Positions 1-12,600 of a stretch of 64,000 bases of DNA are shown here, piece after piece (within the stretch, counting starts at the first letter, position 1; each line of letters begins with the position of its first letter). Origin of the DNA: Pavona decussata (taxonomy: Eukaryota); assembly GCA_977016875.1 (NCBI GenBank), contig CDRNST010000354.1, forward strand, positions 806,001 through 870,000. Direction: 5' to 3'. Under the pieces are notes generated by a model, which was not told the origin of the DNA, made no database searches, and worked only from the letters and a program-made list of their open reading frames with translations. A program made the translations under genes and the position numbers.

Positions 1-4
1 ACAA

Positions 5-320
5 TCCAAGTTAGTATTTTGATGGTAGTTTATTGGAATATCATGTTTAACAGGTAACAGTCCAATAAAATACCATGAAACCAGACTTGGATTGTTAAGT
101 GACTGATAAAAACCAGTTATTTACCAATACAACTCCAAGTTAGTTTTGATGGTAATTTCTTGGAAAATCACTCCCATCACATGATAATGCAATAGAAATC
201 ATAAAACCAGACTTGGATTGTTGAGTGACTGATAAACCAGTTAATTACCAATACAACTCCAAGTTAGTTTTGATGGCAATTTATTGGAAATCCACTTCTA
301 GCATGTGATAATCCATTAAA
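5..320. repeat. ~125-bp tandem repeat (~2.5 copies), probable subterminal repeat
   Basis: CCAAGTTAG recurs at about 6, 135 and 259; the block AAACCAGACTTGGATTGTT.AGTGACTGATAAA occurs twice. Confidence 0.8.
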
Positions 321-631
321 AAGGAAACAGTATAGCAAACTTGCAAACTCATTTTTAAAACCACTGCTAATAATTTTCATTGTACATAAATAATTTATTT
401 TCGATTCAATTAAAGAACATTCTTTATATTTAAATGGTAAACATTATCTTTTGTTTAACTGCATTTTTCGTTTTATGTGGGAGACAGTTTATGTTTCGTT
501 TTTTGCTTGACTTCTCCTCAATAATTTTACGACAATAACACAATAACACAAATATCCATAGGTACATTTCTGGGTAGTATCCATAAACAGCAGTCCCTGC
601 AATCTAACCCTTTCCCAGGTCCAAGGGTGGG

Positions 632-1577
632 TTAAGGACAGACTCTAGAAATAAGGCTGCCTTCAATTAAAAGTGTTTCTGAACAGTAGAACAAGGCAAC
701 ATCTCTGAACACTACATCATCGTAATATGAATAATGGCACTGATAATGGCACTCCTCATCAACCCAACAAGAATATGCCACCTGCCAGCAGCTAACCCTA
801 ACTAAGTAGTAGTATGGGATTGTCCCTGAATGACCGCAATGGGGACAAGGTTCATCTCTCGATTCCATCACCCCATAGTGACTAGAATGGTCATTACTTA
901 CACATATCCAATAATGTTTTGGTTCAGAAAAACCCAGTTCCTTTAGCAGTGTTTGTACATCATCCCAGTTTCTTGGCCAGTGAATTGCAGCATCATCATT
1001 TCTACTTATATTCAAATCTTTACCCCATTGTAGAAGTTCTTCAAAATGATTTACGAAGCAGCCCATTTTCTGTTTCATTTCCACTAACCGAAGAACACTA
1101 TCCTGCACAAACTTCTTTACATTCTCTTCCTCATCATCACTGCCAACCGAGTCTGTTTCATCATCAATTGGTCCTGACTCGTCATCATTATCAGCTGACC
1201 CTGAACCACCAGCACTACTACAGTTGTTGGATGAAATATCATCATGTGCCCCGGCACAAAGATCACTAGGGTTTGGCAATTCGCTGTAAGTGTCTGCAAA
1301 ACAAGAAACAAATTCGTGCTCTTCATATTCCGCAGGATACTCCAAAGGTGAGTACTCCAGTTCCTCCAACGTTTTACGTGTTTTTTTAATAGGTGAAGGC
1401 TGAGATGATTGTGCTCGTTCTGACCTCAAGTGCTTCCATGAGGTCATACGCCAAGTTGCCCTGCCATTTGTCACATGGACAGTGTACATGAGGTTTTCCT
1501 TGCTTGCTGATTTCTCTAGCTTCAGCGGTTAATTGACAATGGCAGCAAGTAAGAGAAAAGTCTTCCCCTGCTTGCAT
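632..1577 (-). pseudogene. CACTA/EnSpm transposase remnant (N-terminal transposase-associated region; catalytic core missing)
   Basis: HVHCPCDK...TWRMTSWKHL (frameshift near 1480), acidic linker, then KHYWICVSNDH...CPHCG...IPYYYL, as in EnSpm TnpD N-termini. Ends shortly after YYYL with no DDE core. Confidence 0.6.
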
Positions 1578-2251
1578 TCCAGTTTGTTTAACACAGAAAG
1601 CAAAACACAGATAGGCAAGAAAGAAAAGAACCGCAACGTTTATAACCAACGCCATATCAAGTCCGCCATGTTTACTCTTCAGTGTACGTACGGGGTCTGG
1701 TAAGCATAAAGCCACAAGGGATCTGGGAATGAGAAAGTGAACGCGCCAAAACGACAGTCATCACAGCAAAGGAAGACAGGAAAGGTTCGATCACGGCTAA
1801 ATTGAAATAAACACAAACCAGGAGCTGGTATGGCTGAAAATAGCGAGGCAGCTGCCAGTGCATTGTCTTCAGAAAACCCAGGTAGATATTTTTGAAATGA
1901 TAGCTATTGATAGTGCGCCGTTACGAGTACTTATTTAGCTTCTTTGGTCTCTTCAAACCCATAATTATAAGCTTAGTTTTTGGCGCCATTTCTTGTTCAG
2001 TTGGTGAAAACAATAAGCTTAGCAAGCGCTTATTTTAGGGATTAGCGGAGCCATAGTTTAATAAACGTTCAATAAGACAAGTTACACCTGCGGTTAAGTA
2101 TATTTGAGACGCCTAGGAAGTAGTGGGTGAAATTTTGTACACTCCCATGCCACACAACTGTGCAGAGCAGCTTGATGTTGTTGCCGAGCGGCTTCTTTCG
2201 ATTTTTTTGGGGGGTCAAAAATGTTTGTGTTCCAGTCCGCTCACGTCCTAG

Positions 2252-5167
2252 ATAACTGTTATTTTTCCCTTTTATGAACAATCAGTGGAATGGAGTCCTG
2301 CTGAATTAGCAGCATGGTTTAAGACACAACATCCCACTTTAAATGAGGAAGCAAGTCTTCTACAGGGTAAGCATTGTGTAATTTTGGCTTTCCATCTCCT
2401 TTTTTGCTATTTGTTTGCTTACAGGGCTGGGGTAAAATTGGGAGATGGCTAATCCATGTGCAGAGCGGCATGGGAAGACTTCTCCTCACGGCAGTTTGTC
2501 CATACATGTATTAATATTATTTGCATGCGGCCTAATATACAATGGCTTCACATCATTTATAGGAAAAGTAAGGAGGCCCATACTATATACTTTTTTTGAC
2601 TGTGTTTTCAATGTTAAACACACCACTCATAGGAGCTTATTATTATGATTCCATACTAGATAATGACATATCTGGTAAAACACTATCACTGCTAGACAGG
2701 CAGTGTTTGAAGGACCTTGGAATTACATCAATCAGAAAACAACTCGCTGTGTTGGCTTGCATGAACTACTCTGTCAGTAAAAGTATGGTCCAACATATCT
2801 TTGTCTTGTGTGATAGTTCTTTCATACACAACAATTGCCATTGAGCATGATTTGAGTCAAATTCTTCCAGAAGTAAAAGTGGTAAATTGCACTCCCTAAA
2901 CCTGGGTAGCTTAGTGGGGAGGGTAGGGGTTTAGTGGAGAAATTTATTTGACTGGAACATTTCTTGATTCTAATATAATTGGGCCATTTTTTTTGTGATA
3001 AGAGATATTCATCTTAAAGGGTGGGCATAAGAGTAGAGTATTCAATTGAACCTCATATAAATTTCAACACATGTGAACACATGGAGGAATTATTAGTGTG
3101 GCAAAACGTATCAGCTAGGCAAATATGTCAGATATCTGTGTGCAACTTCATGCACCCAAACTTGAAAGTGAGCAGCACATCCAATATTTGAACAAACAAA
3201 GCTTTCAAATAATATTAAATGATAATTATAAACCCCTTTCATAGAATGCTTGTCAAACAACATTTTAATGAAATTAATTTTAGCAAATAGTGAAAGAGAA
3301 TCCAGCCCAAAATCAAGGTCTGCCCAGAGTCCTTCAAAGGGTATGAAAGCAAAAATAACAAGAAAAGACAAACAAGAAATGACAGCTGAGGACAAACATT
3401 TGTACCATAACAAGTGAGTACTGTTTTATTAACGGAGTACCCTCTGAATTTGGGAACAGAAAACAATGTAACTTGGAAATGATTGAAAATGTGATTCCAT
3501 AATGTACAATATCTTTTTTAAATTGCAGGATCAAGCTCATAAGGAAGGAATGCTCCAAGAGGTGGCCTGGAAACAAGAAAGTGTATTTTCGCAGTAACAA
3601 TGTGAACAGCTTAATAATGCTCTCAGAAATGGTGTCTTCATTGGAGCCCATCTGTACAGTGAGGCAAATTGGCTTTGGGCAAAGTAAGTGAAGGTTACCT
3701 ATTGAACCCTGACTAAAGCCAAGTCACAAATAGTGGTTATTGTGGAGAAAAAAAAATCCCAATGAAAGGTGCCTGAAGTTTTAAACTTGCAATAATTTGT
3801 GACTCTATTTTGCAGGGGTCCAGCCATAGAGGTTTATAATACATGAATGCCAGTAAGACGACGTGCATTACATATATGTGGTTACATAATAATATTATTC
3901 ATCTAACATAGCAATCTACACAGTATCCTCTGAGTTGAGGTTTAAGCTCAGTCAGTTGTCTTTTGTGTGTTTGGATTTCTTAATGATTATTTTTTTCTTG
4001 TGTGATTGTTTCAGGTGCAATCAGAAACCACATAATACAGTGGGCGAATGAAAAAACCGGAAACTAACTGATGGCTATGATTTTGAGGTACATCTGCTTG
4101 TTAATTCTATTTAGTTAGCAATTTGGGAATGGAACATTACCTTTTTCCTCTTGATTTTTTAACAGAAATCTAGGACACCTGCAAAGAGGGCTATTTCAAG
4201 TCAAGCAACAGATTCAAACCAGAACATTGGTAAGTAAAGGCTATTGTCACAGCCATCCTTTTTTGTGCTAAAACCACAACATATAATAATGCTTGCTGGA
4301 AAAGAAAAGCTAACATGACAAAGTTCTATATGTAGACTATTACATCTATTCATAAACCTGTGACTTCAGACATTCTTGTCAGGAGCATTTCAGTTATGAT
4401 CTGTTGATGACAGTACAAGCATTATTACAGATCAGTTTTTGATTTCATAGCAAGGCTGATTCTCAAAACATGATTATGAAGTGCAGGTTGAGCAGTAGAT
4501 GATTTAATAATATCAACTGTTAGGCTTCAACACAATAAGTAAGCCTGTTTAGTGTGTGCTTTGTAATTGTGTCTGTATTATGAAGGTCTTGTTGAGTTCT
4601 CTGTACTAAGACAAAAATAAGAAAATACACTGAAGGAAATACTAAAGTTTGAGAATTCACAATTTCTACAAGGAATTGTCTGGCAGGTAGGTCACACAAC
4701 CCTCCTGCCTGCCAGACATTCCTTGCAAAATTGCAATTTTTGAATTTTTATCAACTATTCCTTGCATATTTCTTTCAGGAACATCAATCATTTGTTAGAT
4801 TCAGTATGGTGAATCTATTTGTAAACCTTTAATTTTTTATTTCATTTAACATATTTTAACATTTTTCACACAATTTAAGACAAATCATTAAGAAAAGGGG
4901 CTATACTTAATACTTGATGAGATTTTAAAGTTAACATATGTTATTAAAAACTGGATCATTGTATAATGCAATGCCAGGGATTTGATTGGCTTAGCGGCCA
5001 TGGTATATGAGCCATTATACCATGCCCGATAAATGGTGACCATCAAATTGTCTTCTAATTGTTTTTTCAAAGCGAAATCAGCAAGATCTTGATTGTTTTT
5101 AATAAAACAATTATTCCAATCGCGCTTGTTGGATATGAGATGATTATAGCCAACTCGGCGCTACGCA

Positions 5168-5203
<36 letters not shown>

Positions 5204-5741
5204 GCTCGTGGAATAATTGTTAACTATAATTACTCAGTTAGCCTCTCAATGACCTGAGTGACTCATTGCTTTTTCTTTTTGCTTTCAGATGAGAGAGACA
5301 CAGAAAAACCTAGTCTTGGCGAAACCTGCAGCAGTGAAGGTATTAATGACATATCTCTGTTATCCGACTACAGTGCACACTTCATCTGTCCAGTATTCTT
5401 CAAAACGGTGACCTTCAAAAATTTTAAGTGTCAAAAAACACCTTGCCCCAGCCGCTAAAGTGCTCAACATCAAGTTTCGAGGGAATGGAAAATATGAATT
5501 GGCAAAGAAAATAGCTGCTGAACTTGTAAAGAAAGAGATGGTTCGTGTTGTTGAAGGTGCAAAGTACAACTGCCTTTCAAGAGATGAAATAGTAATCGAA
5601 CAAGAACTGGATCTGCAATTAGCTAAACCAAGCACTTCAGAACTAAATTCATCCTCAAGTTCTACCATGTCTGTTGATGACAGAGATGACCTTTCATCAC
5701 TGTCTGATTTTTCTGATGAGCAGAATGTTAACACAAGCTAG
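2252..5741 (+). pseudogene. 7-exon SAM (sterile alpha motif) domain gene, probable CACTA accessory gene, two frameshifts
   Basis: Exons ~2252-2366, 2660-2782, 3284-3413, 3529-3683, 4015-4087, 4166-4229, 5289-5741 with phase-compatible GT-AG junctions. Exons 1+2 give EWSPAELAAWFKTQHPTLNEEASLLQDNDISGKTLSLLDRQCLKDLGITSIRKQLAVL, a SAM-like pattern. Confidence 0.7.
4945..5222. mobile_element. non-autonomous element with long terminal hairpin, in an intron
   Basis: Imperfect palindrome 5106-5221: AACAATTATTCCA..GTTGGATATGAGATGAT..ATAGCCAAC / GTTGGCTAT..ATCATCTCATATCCAAC..TGGAATAATTGTT. Confidence 0.6.
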
Positions 5742-5938
5742 CTGGTTTGCAGTCAGACGTGATACAATGTATGTTATCCGATTACAGTGTTATCATGCCT
5801 GTAAAAGAGGAAAAATTATTTTAAAACTGGACTGCGTACTCTTAAAGTTCATGTTGTAACGGTTGACAATGTAAAAGGGTTTTTTGTTTCAGTTCAAATT
5901 ATTGTACGGCAGGTCTGAGCTATAAAGAGGACACTATT

Positions 5939-5984
<46 letters not shown>
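5939..5984. repeat. (AAT)n microsatellite
   Basis: About 15 AAT units read directly. Confidence 0.95.
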
Positions 5985-5986
<2 letters not shown>

Positions 5987-6059
5987 CAGTGTTAATGTTT
6001 CCTGTTTTTGGAGATGTGCATATTAATAATTATTAGATTTACTGACTTTGACAAAAGCA

Positions 6060-6645
6060 GCTTCAAATGTTGGATATTTTGAATAAAAATTAAGTTACCA
6101 ATCTTGGAAAAGTTACTTCCATTGTTGGACACTAATATTGTGGTATGGCCAACCTTGGTAATGGTGTTGTCAATGTTGAATATTTAGTAATTTACCAATG
6201 TTGGCAAAGCTGTTTCCCAATGTTGGACATGTAAGTTAATGATTTTCCAACCTTGGAAATGCTGTTTACAACTTTGGACTTTTATTAAATTTACCAACCT
6301 TGGAAATGCTGTGTCCAATATTGGACTTTCATTAAATTTACCAACCTTGGAAATGCTTTTTCCAATATTGGACTTTCATTAAGTTTACCAACCTTGGAAA
6401 TGCTGTTTTCAATATTGGACTTTCATTAAATTTACAAACCTTGGAAATGCTGTTTCCAATATTGGACTTTCATTAAATTTACCAACCTTGGTTAATTAAA
6501 AATAGACTTCCAACCTTGGAAAATTATGAAATGACTTTCCAATGTTGGTAAGTGTATCTCTTTTTCCAATGTTGGTGTTTCACTTGAATTTCCAATATTT
6601 TTCCAATATTTTCCCAAGGATTTTCCAATGCTCTTCCAATTTTGG
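6060..6645. repeat. subterminal array of CCAA..TTGG motifs including a 47-bp tandem repeat (~5 copies, 6247-6492)
   Basis: CCAACCTTGG(AAATGCT) at 6247, 6294, 6341, 6388, 6435 (variant) and 6482, period 47; many more CCAATGTTGG-type motifs flank it. Confidence 0.9.
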
Positions 6646-6885
6646 CTACATGAGTGACAGGCGCCAAAAATGTGACATCAAAACAGAAAAATAGTTGGAT
6701 GACGCCTACAGAAGTGTTAAGAATGGATGGATCACCCTATGGGTGGATCCACATACTTCCTTCGAACGAAAACAGGGAGAGATAGAAAGAAGGGAAGGTA
6801 AAGCAAAGAGGAAGAGAAATTCAGGTATGAATGGAAAACCATATTGCCTGTGTTTCCCGCTTGTTACAAAATTACTCAATGTTTA

Positions 6886-7810
6886 ATGGAAACAATGTCC
6901 TCCTTTAAAGTTGTTCATTCAGACGACACTATCGACGGCGGTGACAGTACTGAAGAGAACAACCATGACTCCTACAAAAACAGACTCGCGCGACTGCGAG
7001 AAAAACATGGAGAAACATTAGCGGACTTTAAACTGAAATATTGGGAAAAATGTTGGTAACCTTGGACATAAAAAAATTTCTTTTGGTAAAATAGAAAAAA
7101 ATTAATCTCATATTTAAATTTGGCTTTTCAAAAACTACATATTTTAAAAGTATGTGCGTACATTTGTTATTTTAAATTACAAACTTTGTCCGTCATTGTT
7201 CATGGACGAAAAATACAGTTGTGTGCCTTGACTTTTTTTTATTACTACAGGTAAATAAAACTCATCACAGTGAGGATGAAATGCCTCAGGTTTCCTTTTT
7301 TACCGGGAGAAATAAAGCCAGCTGTTCAACGGTTGACCTACCTTCATCTTCTTCAGCTCAGCCTTCAATGAAAGAAACAACATTAAACTCAATTTCGGAT
7401 GCTGAGGAAAAGGTAACTCTCTCACTTGATACTCCACTTTGCGAACAAGCAGCGCGAGGCAATCCTGGAGAGTGATTTTTTGTTGTTGCAATTGCTGCCA
7501 TTAATTGCAACAAAACTCTGAAACCGGTGTGTTTTCTTTTAAATCTTGCGCTCGAGATCCATAAATTTTGAAAGCACACTCGTCACCTCTACTTAACAAG
7601 AGAAAATTGCACTCCTTACTGATGTAATTTATTTTTCATTTTCCACAGCTACGTTTAAGAAGTATGATCTATAACCAGATTGCACAACTGAAGGATCTGT
7701 TTCATAAAGAAATCATTGCAAGAGGTCGATTTGACAAAGAACGTGCAAAATTAGTTAATGAGCTAAATAACATCGACCAAATTTTTCTGATTGATTATTT
7801 CGAATAAAGG
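6886..7810 (+). pseudogene. decayed spliced ORF of unknown function, convergent with the IS630-like transposase
   Basis: Exon-like pieces METMSSFKVV...KYWEKCW (6886-7056), ~7251-7570 and ~7650-7808, with AG acceptors and internal stops. Confidence 0.3.
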
Positions 7811-7948: not shown

Positions 7949-9684
7949 TTAAAGGTATTCACAATGAGGAATGTAGTTTGCAATGGCTTCATCAGCTTTT
8001 TGCAAAAAGGCTTCGAAAACCACGTTCTCTAGTTCATCACACTGCTCCCAAACAAGGTCGTTTTCTCGTATCCAGCTCTTTGCCAGTGCAATCACTCCTT
8101 CGCAAGGCATCAGATTCGGACTATAAGGTGGATGAAAAATAAGGAGTGCACCGGAAGCGTTTATTGCATCAACAACACGTTGTGAATGATGTATGGCTGC
8201 ATTATCTGAGAACAACAATGACAAATTAAAAAATGTCTCAAATCTATAATGTGGTCTAAAAAATCTTTAAACGTTTTATGTCATACCCATTATAACTAGA
8301 AAGTGAGGATTTGCACTATTAAAAGGCAGAAGGTTCGGGACAAGCTTCTCATTAACAAACTGAAGAAAGACATCTCCATTTGTTGCTCCTCTATGAATAC
8401 CAATTTCAAGCAAGCCTTCAGAGGATACAATTGGGATGGCTGTAATTCGTGGATGCCAATTTGTATGCTCACTTTGGCACTATAACCTCGGAAACTGTAG
8501 CCAAATCTCCTTGTAAGTTGACGATCCTTAAAAAAGAATAAAACATACCTACTAATCTTCAAAAACAAGGGGTGTAAAAACAAGTGAAAATAAGGTTTCC
8601 TTGAATTATACTTACAAATCCACTTTCATCAAGAAAGACAAACATCTCTGCATGTAGGAGACAAGTATCCGCACGAAAATTGATGTTGGGCAATTCGCTT
8701 TGTTGTCAAGCAGCTTTCTTAAGCTAGAAAAAATAGTTACACTAGTGTTAGTTCGGGGCGACTTTAGCTTAAACTTGGTGTTCAGTAGAAGGTGGAGGAT
8801 AAAATGTGCCCTCACTGATCACACTTCATTTTCGGACAGTATGGTGACAAAATTGATTGGAATAATGGGCAGTTCAGTTAACACCACGGCAACAACAGAG
8901 ACAAAAATGCCACTTCAAAAAAACAACCCTCCTTCTTTCAAATTACTTTTATTTTAATTTTTCCATTACGCATAATTTGTTTCTTGTTACTGAGGTCTCT
9001 CGAGTTTGAATTTCATAGGTAGGAAACTGCCATGCCTTCGTGTTCTCCAAAAAAACGAAAATTTGATCATTTTGATGTTGTTGTTTGGCAAAGACTGGCG
9101 CGTGAAGAAATATGAAAAAAGCACGAGCAGAGGCACTTTTTCCCTTTGTCACTTGGCGGCCATCTCGAGTCTCATGGGAATAAAAAGCTTCATTCTTGCA
9201 CAGCAAACCCCTCTCTAAATTCGCGTCCGGCCGAGGCTTGTTGTGCAAAAACAAAGCTATTTATTCTTCTGAGTAAACAAATATCCCCGCGTTAAAAGGT
9301 CTATAATAATCCTGCCGATAACTGCTTACCCGTTTTCTTGTAACACCATTTCTTTGAAAGTATCGGCAAACCGTCGACACTTGAAAATGGTTTCCAAATA
9401 CAGTCATAATTTTCTCTTACAATCTCAGCCAGTGTCTTCTCTGAGTGCTCTAGCATAGCTTCCATAATCACGAGCTCCTCACGCAGGTGCATTCCAACCA
9501 GATCCAAAGGTCTTCCAGTTTTCTTGGCCACAACTTCACCCGTGTGCACAATTTCTTTTATGAATCTCTTTACCGAGCTTGGTGACATTGCCAGCATACC
9601 GGATGTATCCTCAATGTTATAACCAAGGAACACATGAAGCCATACAGCCCTTAAAAGTAAATCGTCCGAGTATGCTTTGGGCAA
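7949..9684 (-). pseudogene. IS630/Tc1-mariner superfamily DD34E transposase, 4 exons, frameshifted
   Basis: N-terminal (M)PKAYSDDL..R HTH...GRP; FVFLDESGF (~8616-8645); DNAAIHH-x-HPPYSPNLMPCE with 34 residues between D and E; minus-strand GT donors near 9329, 8615 and 8286. Confidence 0.85.
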
Positions 9685-12600
9685 ACTTTTTTTCCAGCAC
9701 TGTATTTTTTATTGCAAAGAATGATAATAGTAAATTATTGATTATCATGATGGAAATGAGGTTATTGTTCAAACACTACCCACAAATCCGTTGGGTCTCA
9801 TCGTTCACGGTTTATGCTTTCAAGGTGTCAACGTTTTTGTAATCGAGTGTATCAGGGCTCCTGGTTTATATAGCCGACACAGTGCCCGCGCTCTATATAG
9901 CTACTTTGAATTTTATTGTACAACATTATAGTTCATATTCACAGCCTTTCAGGATATATATAGGACATACAGATCATCATTCACTGCCGCAACCATCTAA
10001 TCAGTGGCTCATCTCTAAATTCCTTCTCACTAGTCGAGTGTAATTCAGCACTGCATATACTGTATTATGGATCCTCTTGTTATACGAAATTTTCATGATC
10101 ATTACAAAACAGAAAAAACCTAGCGTTTACAAGATGATTAATATATACACTTTTAATTTCATTCTCCGGGACAAAAATAGGCATCAGAAACGTGATTTTC
10201 ATTGACAGTTGTTAGAAACTAGCTAATGCTTATTCGGATGGCGCAAGCAAACAATTAAAGCGTATTACAAGGTTTGAAAAGTTGTAAGATTACAACCAAC
10301 ATACACCGTGTAAGTTTGTTCGAGACTTTACGAGTCTCTGCCATTTAACTATATTCTTTCCAACTATATTTCGTGCTTTTAGTTAGCAATAAAATTCATC
10401 TCTGAGAAAAATAAACACAAGTTAAAATTTGGAAGGTCAAGTCGTTGCTCTTTTAAACAAATGTGTTAAAACTCAGAACAAAATGTTTATTGCTTTATAC
10501 CAAGATGTTTTCCACAAATTTCGTTATAGTAATCAAAGCAGTGTTGGACAAATAAATGCTAAGCAAAAATTGTACGTGAAGGCCGTCTTTGAGAAGCAAA
10601 GCTTAGGTAAATCAGGAAGCTATGTTACCTCAAACCTCAAATGTGTCACTAGCTTACATATTCTTACATGGAAATATTTGTCCCTAAGTAAATCTGTGTA
10701 AAATCGCAGTTCCGATCAGCCTTGCAGAAATTTGAGTCATTTATATTTTTCCCTGATTAGATCTTTTACAGATCCTGCGTATACTTGCAGCATTTTCGTT
10801 GTTTACGTTTAAGTTTATTGAAACTCTCTGGCAGTTGAAAAGAACTGAATTAGCGAGCTAAATTTACAGAAGATAATGAAATGAATAAACTAATCTAATA
10901 ATACTAACAACTAACTAATTGAAATATTAACATGTAAAAAATTCCTCCCCCAAAAACTGTTTACAATACAAAGAATCGGTCAATCAGAATAGTATTTCAG
11001 TACGAATTCACAATTAAACCTGTAATTTTTTGGCTGTTGAATTCCCAGAAGTACTCGAAAATTTCGTAGAAAGTCCGTGGCCTGTATAACGTTTTGAGAT
11101 GTCTGCTCGCTCGTCACTTGGATAAAACAACAATTTGTACTTGAAGCACAATTTCTTCGCCATTATCTCTCGGATTTCCGCTGTCAAAAGTGTTGAGTAT
11201 TACTTAGTAGTTTACCATTTCGAAAAGGTGTGTTTTCCTTTGGAAAATGCCAAAATGGGCGAGTAAAAATTTAGCCACGCGGCCCACGAGGCAACAAAAA
11301 TTGAAATTTGACTCTGCTTCCTATAGACAAAAAGCTCTTTTGTCTAGGTCCCCCAAAGACGGAAAAAAATATGCGTGGTAATCCACTAGTCAGTGGAAAG
11401 CCCTGCACCCCCATACCTGGAGAATGCGCGTCATTAGTGGGGGATTTTAGCGGTTTTTAGTGGTCATCTTTGCCCCAGTGTGCGGGGTGTTCGACAACAT
11501 TAGACACAAATAACAGTGACTGGGGACCGTTAGCGGGGCTAGCGGGGCTTTGGCAGGGATTTCGCTTTTGAATAGGCCTGCAAAGAACACTGGGAAAGCA
11601 TATGATCTCAAAATGGTAGAAGGTATGTACGATTTAAAATCCATTCTTTTCATGCTTGTAATGGGCCATCGATTAAATTCTGTGTTCAGTCTCTAAATAT
11701 TATCATGTCTTGTAGTGTAATTAGAAAAAGTTGGGTATTGTTTATGCCCTTGTCATACTTGATTAGCGATTTATTTAGGGCGTTGACCTTTTGTCTTTTG
11801 GCACTTGTTTTCATTTCCGTTGCAACTGTGCAAACCGAGCCAATGGGCGTTTTTTATTTGTTGTTTTAAATAACTGTATTTGTTTTTTTATTGAACTATG
11901 TTTTTATAATGTGCTCAGTGTGTCAATTTACTTTTAAGTCTTTCAAATTCAAATTGTTGGATCGGATCGATTTTCAGTTTTCTGTCGCACCTTTTAGTTA
12001 TAAACATCAGTTCAGTATATTTATATTAAAGGCAGATGGTGTAACTTAATGCAATAATACAGTATATTTTAGCTTTTAATCGCTCCATTGTGAAGACCTC
12101 AGTCATTCATATGGTGAGAATGTTTGGTAATATAGCTATGGCCACATGTGTATACGAATATAAGCTTATATTTGCTAGTCATTAATCGATTTTGATCTTA
12201 AAGCTTATCGAAGGCTTTAACCTTGTGTTTTAAGTGGCAACGAAATTTTTGTTTTTCAAAGGTTTTATTTCAATATAAGGACAGCAGGTGGGCAGTGGAC
12301 ATTTGTGAAACTGAGGGTGTCATTATGAAAATCAAGGATTATTACAAACTCAGCAGCACTGCTGTTGTGGTTTTAAAGAAATATTCAGACTTGGTCTGAC
12401 TGGATCGACATTAAAGTTGAAGATATCTGTGACAAGGACAAAATTAATGTAATTGTGCTGGAGCAGAACACTGACAGTGACAAGTCCATTGACAAAACTC
12501 AAGTATCAAATATCCGGGTAATTGCACATGATTGATTTGAGTCCAGTTCCAGTTAATAGATCTGTGTGTTGTCCATACTGTAACAAGTTTAGTACCTTGT

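Follow-up and report, generated by a model that had tools for sequence, protein, structure and literature searches.

A SAM-domain gene of Pavona decussata as the probable second gene of a coral CACTA/EnSpm-like transposon family

In maize, the TnpA protein of En/Spm reads the subterminal motifs of the transposon and pairs its ends; beyond this system, next to nothing is known about the second, non-catalytic protein that CACTA elements encode. PIF/Harbinger transposons likewise encode more than a transposase, as they carry a separate gene for a Myb-like DNA-binding protein. Here we describe a gene for a SAM-domain protein in a 64-kb stretch of the genome of the coral Pavona decussata (contig CDRNST010000354.1, here C354, 806001–870000, forward strand). 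This stretch is referred to below as the window, and positions are counted from its first nucleotide unless another contig or locus is named. The region 1830–5741 is probably a degenerate version of the second gene carried by a CACTA/EnSpm-like transposon family of scleractinian corals, in which that gene is divergently oriented to the transposase gene.

The family resembles maize En/Spm in its CAC ends, a 3-bp target duplication, motif-packed subterminal regions and two proteins, one of them a transposase (of the Transposase_21 type, in the corals by transitive homology); by analogy, the second coral protein would be the natural candidate for the reader of the subterminal motifs. It differs in that this protein has no similarity to TnpA and carries a SAM domain, and in that its gene is a separate, divergent unit of eight exons, whereas TnpA is an alternative splice form of a single transcription unit. 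The coral motif is a 10-bp palindrome, CCAANNTTGG, and the ends read CACAGG/CACGGG rather than CACTA. With PIF/Harbinger the family shares the presence of a separate gene for a non-catalytic protein on a DNA transposon, but the transposase is of another superfamily and the second Harbinger protein is of the Myb/SANT type without a SAM domain. An animal member of the CACTA superfamily, SmTRC1 of Schistosoma mansoni, encodes a Transposase_21 transposase and shorter products lacking the transposase domain, which were proposed to be TnpA-like; these additional proteins arise by alternative splicing, contain no domain that could be recognised and are not conserved in other animals, and the element has ends starting with CCC and a 2-bp duplication (DeMarco et al., 2006; PMC1636069). 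The coral family is similar as an animal member with an additional non-transposase product, but its second gene has a SAM domain and has been conserved among different element clades and at least three coral genera. In our literature search, no paper described a protein with a SAM domain for CACTA/EnSpm or any other DNA transposon.

Gene structure, SAM domain and decay of the window copy

The window gene has eight exons (Table 1). The initial annotation had proposed seven, beginning at 2252 and joined by six GT–AG introns; the introns stand, as all six (2367–2659, 2777–3283, 3414–3528, 3684–4014, 4088–4165 and 4230–5288) have GT..AG ends and every splice site of the gene is intact, but the exon count and the start do not, the first exon being placed at 1830 and the second at 2286 by phase and by comparison with a paralogue. 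This paralogue, on contig C119, has only ~40% protein identity to the window gene and conserved intron positions and phases: an ATG exon ending in phase 1 is followed by a short exon opening at the conserved SAM tryptophan, a phase-1 intron and the second half of the SAM domain. Intron 2367–2659, which had been noticed to split a SAM-like motif, is also a phase-1 intron at the matching SAM position. A start of the exon at 2252 was considered and rejected; this site is preceded by AG but offers no ATG and clashes in phase with exon 1830–1881, whereas the acceptor 2285/2286 fits and is supported by the paralogue. For exon 3 the donor 2776/2777 is preferred, with 2782/2783 possible in equal phase. 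Junctions 5/6, 6/7 and 7/8 are confirmed by collinear annotated coral proteins, chiefly P0165 (Montipora capricornis XP_068733302.1), which spans exons 5–8 with up to 84% identity.

The protein of this gene has a SAM domain, as first read from the letters alone. The window exons were scanned one by one against Pfam, and database homologues served for full-length analysis. Window exon 3 aligns to SAM_2 over profile positions 21–61 with E values of 0.0025–0.009 and 16.5–18.4 bits, below the cut-off of 20.5, and SAM_1 is likewise below threshold at the correct profile positions. Exon 3 of C119, however, exceeds both curated Pfam cut-offs (SAM_2, 28.2 bits against 20.5; SAM_1, 25.5 bits against 23), exon 2 of C119 matches SAM profile positions 4–26 (the first third), and the full-length homologue P0102 (Porites lobata, 320 amino acids) reaches 41.4 bits with SAM_2 (E 1.7e-10). 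All six alignment rows that cover SAM-coding sequence match a SAM profile; in the C88 copy, where the domain is unsplit, SAM_1 is matched across its whole length (E 0.0013). The domain is also present in P0174 and P0176 from Oculina.

The five-helix SAM fold is seen in the predicted model of homologue P0102 rather than in the window's own product. The AlphaFold model of P0102 (mean predicted local distance difference test score, pLDDT, 84.7) has three folded parts, of which the SAM domain (residues ~25–95) is modelled at pLDDT 88–95. It superimposes on solved SAM domains of TIR-1/SARM1, Scm, DGK-delta, Shank and PHC3 with Z scores of 11.6–13.1 and root-mean-square deviations (rmsd) of 1.1–1.8 Å; by VIA-align the values are 13.1 for TIR-1 (rmsd 1.1 Å), 12.6 for Scm/Sfmbt and 11.9 for DGK-delta, and by Foldseek the TM score against the Shank2 SAM domain is 0.92 (rmsd 1.0 Å). 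With the oligomerising SAM domains of Shank, DGK-delta, Ph/Scm/PHC3, SAMD1 and SARM1/TIR-1 it shares the five-helix fold and 22–31% identity over 68–74 residues; none of those is encoded by a transposon, and likeness in fold to polymer-forming domains does not show polymerisation.

The family protein (~320–390 amino acids) opens with the SAM domain, which a lysine-rich linker joins to a conserved helical middle domain; there follow a second basic stretch, a linker rich in acidic residues and serine, a conserved C-terminal domain and an acidic tail. A conserved VK.R..GKY stretch contains near-invariant basic residues (K, R, K), and the C-terminal domain modelled on its own folds into three helices and a hairpin (pLDDT 86). 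Pfam searches with all exons and with the full-length homologues returned only SAM families, and the sequence shows no homology to TnpA of plants. For residues 105–320, no usable match came from the ESM Atlas.

The matching intron phases reported initially hold as sums, the spliced total being 1125 nt, but they add up across the window gene only because two 1-nt indels cancel in length. The A-run 4051–4056 in exon 6 has one A fewer than in all four other copies compared (A6 versus A7), and the T-run 5422–5425 in the last exon has one T more than in two aligned copies (T4 versus T3). Spliced exon 6 is thereby shifted into a premature TAA at 4063–4065. In the family, the last exon is a single continuous frame from 5289 onward; a frame-bridging intron at ~5340–5451 was rejected, as the C36 copy has GC at the donor and the upstream sister copy C354up, C119 and C49 read through with conserved residues. 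On balance we take the frameshifts to be real, and the window copy of the SAM gene is most likely non-functional.

The alternative is that the window copy still works, the frameshifts being homopolymer assembly errors and the SAM protein being made from an element without a transposase. This would be in keeping with indels that fall in homopolymers and cancel in length, with the intact splice sites, with a suspicious A-run frameshift in C119 as well, and with a ratio of non-synonymous to synonymous substitution (dN/dS) of 0.38 between the window and C36. The element is otherwise decayed, however, its transposase core being deleted, its right tip gone and a repeat inserted; neighbouring and sister copies (C36, C354up, C13 and C49) have acquired independent stops, and no spliced RNA was found in the runs described below. 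We therefore regard a working window copy as doubtful.

The element and its family

The structure of the family is best seen in C119, a 13.9-kb copy in which inverted ends, CACAGGAAAAAAAGTGAAAT and CACGGGAAAAAAAGTGAAAT, enclose the SAM gene (minus strand) and, head-to-head with it, the transposase (plus strand). These ends read CACAGG/CACGGG (CACAGGAAAAAA... and CACGGGAAAAAA...), each has a tandem array on its inner side, and GCT on both flanks forms a 3-bp target duplication. The C119 transposase covers residues 109–787 of an 800-amino-acid relative in C65. Ends of the C119 type also occur in the window element (on its left side), C13, C36 and C49, and CAAAGG is read in C36 and C354up; the ends of the C119 type begin with CAC and not literally with CACTA. 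Proteins 53–61% identical to the C65 transposase match PF02992, Transposase_21 (P0060 with 29.5 bits against a cut-off of 28.6, P0018 with 27.0 and P0023 with 24.9). Together, the CAC inverted ends, the 3-bp duplication, the subterminal arrays and the relatives matching Transposase_21 support a CACTA/EnSpm-like assignment. The initial proposal that the gene is carried inside a CACTA-like element fits C119 in particular, where ends and duplication enclose the SAM gene. Directly after the transposase open reading frame (ORF), the C65 and C119 elements have a further conserved ORF of 154–267 amino acids (L035:2362–3165 and L037:6278–6742; no Pfam match), which may encode either the C-terminal part of the transposase or a further, third product.

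The window element is a dead, non-autonomous internal-deletion derivative, as the transposase core is absent while the transposase N-terminus and the SAM gene remain. It extends from a left inverted end 148 bp before the window start (CACAGGAAAAAA..., also CACAGGAAAAAATT...; L039:3852) to ~6645, where it lacks the last ~14 bp of the inverted end that the C36 copy retains. The transposase remnant matches only residues 114–256 of the C65 transposase (E 4e-23), without the catalytic core, and shares a region of ~340 bp with the SAM gene that diverges from it; in the C13 copy, similarity to the window extends over this part, from the left array to within the N-terminal region of the transposase. 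Both the head-to-head arrangement with the remnant and the position of the gene between two subterminal arrays had been recognised at the outset and are as described (Table 1). The two arrays were also compared as possible inverted copies of one another, which was not supported, since they shared only 21-nt matches at 81%; they are different repeats with CCAA/TTGG half-sites in common. The repeat of intron 7, which resembles a miniature inverted-repeat transposable element (MITE), is absent from the C36 copy and has dozens of ~90% identical matches among the 40 candidates scored out of 3174.

Table 1. Coordinates of the SAM gene and of other parts of the window element
Feature	Position	Strand	Description
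Transposase-side subterminal array	1–321		124-bp period, 2.5 units
Transposase N-terminal remnant	632–1489	–	Open 285-amino-acid frame; homology to full-length transposases 803–1150, stopping at a YYYL motif
Exon 1	1830–1881	+	ATG, ends in phase 1; layout matches the C119 paralogue
Exon 2	2286–2366	+	SAM domain, first half
Exon 3	2660–2776	+	SAM domain, second half
Exon 4	3284–3413	+	Lysine-rich basic linker
Exon 5	3529–3683	+	Conserved helical middle domain, part 1
Exon 6	4015–4087	+	Middle domain, part 2; frameshifted in the window copy
Exon 7	4166–4229	+	Basic stretch, PAKRA-type
MITE-like repeat in intron 7	4930–5222		~293 bp, high-copy; internal inverted repeat 5106–5144 / 5183–5221
Exon 8 (last)	5289–5741	+	Acidic linker, conserved C-terminal domain and acidic tail; ends with TAG
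SAM-gene-side subterminal region	6050–6645		47-bp-period array (6149–6640) and related units; 16 copies of CCAANNTTGG

About a dozen loci in the genome carry relatives of the SAM gene, and head-to-head pairing with a transposase or its remnant was found at a minimum of 11: the window, C13, C49, C119, C67 (two loci), C225, C65, C88, C8 and C343. At C67:5222845 the SAM gene is paired with a transposase at 5230508; pairing is by coordinates only for C8:1724432 (with 1720941), C67:3246834 (with 3244609) and C343:436143 (with 433918). The paired transposases are only ~30–45% identical to the window remnant, and the association of the two genes is therefore old and general in the family. No intact host gene unlinked to a transposase was found among the roughly dozen loci, the others being truncated fragments as far as they could be resolved. 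These results support the SAM gene as a conserved second gene of the element and not a stray host gene, in line with the initial suggestion that it encodes an accessory protein of a CACTA-like element.

Several of the copies have decayed, with one TAA in C36, two stops in C354up and stops in C13 and C49. Nei–Gojobori counts summed over separately aligned exons gave a dN/dS of 0.11 between lineage 1 and the upstream sister copy, a comparison in which dS is saturated, as well as the 0.38 between the window and C36 given above and 1.04 between the young copies C119 and C49. Such a pattern would be expected of a gene that is required as long as the element is active and that decays once it has inserted.

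The upstream sister copy itself (C354up; L039:1–3795, which is C354:802001–805795) belongs to a sister lineage of the same element and is 5'-truncated. It retains exons 4–8, the last of which contains both of its stops, and has an array of its own as well as the CAAAGG end. It ends 57 bp before the left end of the window element, in matching orientation.

Possible roles of the SAM protein

The palindrome CCAANNTTGG is present 17 times in the 64 kb of the window against 1.6 expected, and 16 of the 17 lie within 6098–6645. Its density is 9–27 per kb at SAM-side ends and 2–4 per kb at transposase-side ends, with none in the interiors; this subterminal concentration is found in every copy and in both protein lineages, the interiors of 5.7 and 12.7 kb having zero copies. 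The half-sites CCAA/TTGG are ~2.5- to 8-fold enriched at both ends by comparison with interiors.

By analogy with maize En/Spm, the SAM protein of active elements may have the role that TnpA has there. The middle domain, the C-terminal domain or both would recognise CCAANNTTGG palindromes in the two subterminal regions, a palindrome of this kind being suited to binding by a dimer; the SAM domain would join the bound molecules into oligomers; and these oligomers would coat, condense and pair the ends for the transposase, regulate the divergent promoter, or do both. Such a TnpA-like role, taken broadly, has in our estimation a substantial chance that nevertheless falls short of even. In its narrower form, with a DNA-binding module of novel fold reading CCAANNTTGG and SAM polymerisation coating and synapsing the ends, we put it forward more tentatively; polymerisation along the subterminal repeats, suggested with the initial annotation, is conjecture. 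As SAM is a classic self-association module, it suggests a concrete mechanism for transpososome assembly, and SAM-polymer end recognition, if true, would be a new architecture of transposon accessory protein. More generally, a conserved, domain-rich and selected second gene together with a candidate motif makes the finding and pairing of ends in animal CACTA elements testable.

A number of results weigh against this interpretation, some of them against the role and others against the gene and element on which it depends. The C-terminal domain lacks a significant match in fold (best Z 4.1; Foldseek E > 1), its low-scoring Foldseek rows being mostly winged-helix proteins below significance. Searching the PDB with profiles of the C-terminal-domain and full-length alignments likewise returned no match. 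The 3-bp duplication comes from one complete copy, with a chance match of 1 in 64. That copy, C119, is complete in structure only; its transposase has one in-frame stop and its SAM exon 4 looks frameshifted in an A-run, and no fully intact copy was found among those examined in the genome. Neither the window remnant nor the genome's full-length transposases give a Pfam match, even at E 10, and Transposase_21 membership is therefore by transitive homology. Both window frameshifts lie within homopolymers and could be assembly errors; DNA contigs over 3940–4225 show the very differences that distinguish the C36 paralogue (92% identical), and so derive from the C36 locus and are uninformative on window exon 6. 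Finally, the search for splice-junction reads, proposed with the initial annotation, did not produce a spliced transcript: over 1500–5900, runs guessed to be RNA yielded no spliced contig and no joint at any predicted intron, although these runs contain almost none of the stretch (0–4% of its words, the DNA runs that contain it being from one study). Guessed-RNA contigs in this region comprised three of low depth at 2288–2458, from one run and unspliced across the exon 2 donor; depth was otherwise confined to the MITE-like repeat 4930–5222, where it was heavy.

The main rival to a TnpA-like role is an element-encoded helper that does not bind the repeats. Its SAM domain would dock onto host SAM proteins (Polycomb-type relatives of Scm, Ph, L3MBTL and SAMD1, or SARM-like proteins) and would thereby direct insertion, oppose silencing or control the divergent promoter, the subterminal motifs being read by the transposase N-terminus. 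Among the top structural matches of the SAM model are indeed hetero-oligomerising chromatin SAM domains (Scm/Sfmbt, PHC3, SAMD1 and L3MBTL3), no DNA-binding fold is recognised in the other domains, and the deletion derivative in the window retains the transposase N-terminus as an open frame of 285 amino acids. Similarity among SAM structures does not, however, predict their partners, and two further conserved domains with near-invariant K/R residues, two basic stretches and a helix-helix-helix-hairpin arrangement would suit nucleic-acid binding. We consider host docking rather unlikely, though a possibility to be kept in sight beside end recognition.

It is also conceivable that the SAM gene has no role in transposition and is carried along as a passenger, having been captured once from the host by a CACTA element (transduplication). 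Capture of host fragments is generally known for CACTA elements, no similarity to plant TnpA is detectable in the protein, and the family has so far been found only in corals. Against this, the gene keeps the same head-to-head position in transposase clades that are only ~30–45% identical to each other; its full domain order and intron positions are preserved; it has been under purifying selection between element lineages (dN/dS 0.11); and an unlinked single-copy host parent was not found in the genome. Capture without function is thus improbable. An ordinary host SAM gene lying beside transposon debris, which the low copy number of about a dozen loci might suggest, can be dismissed as highly improbable, since in C119 the gene sits within the inverted ends and the target duplication, and since copies are spread over many contigs, share flanking arrays and ends, and in most cases examined are truncated or carry stops.

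Coral homologues and neighbouring features

When a profile of the last exon was run against 1.84 billion representatives, 104 relatives were identified, which were mostly single-exon ORFs from unannotated assemblies, with a few models of full length among them. Named proteins closest to those of the window were from Porites, Oculina, Montipora and Nematostella. P0102 (Porites lobata) and P0174 (Oculina) align collinearly with exons 3, 5, 6 and 8, P0176 (Oculina) likewise with exons 3, 5 and 8, and P0067 (Oculina patagonica KAL9976595.1) is a homologue that spans exons 3–8. These uncharacterized SAM-domain proteins in the gene sets of Porites, Oculina and Montipora are probably transposon genes, and some of the models come from decayed copies. 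P0067, which is annotated as a hypothetical protein, follows the wrong frames in exon 5 and in the first half of exon 6, and its gene model seems to have been forced through a transposon copy that had decayed.

The comparison of P0165 with window 3530–4228 gives ~84% identity across exon 5, above the 69–70% identity to the sister copy that lies 5 kb away. Either strong constraint or a horizontal transfer of the element between coral genera could account for this level of identity.

Downstream of the SAM gene, 200 bp 3' of its stop codon, is a (TAA)15 microsatellite at 5941–5985. After the truncated end of the element, three ORF pieces on the plus strand within 6650–7810 (6844–7056, 7221–7472 and 7664–7804) have no Pfam match and are possibly exons. 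Further along, at 7949–9700 on the minus strand, there is a remnant in pieces of a Tc1/mariner-type transposase, in which ORF 7952–8224 matches DDE_3 (E 4.6e-10) and the upstream ORF 9304–9684 is helix-turn-helix-like.

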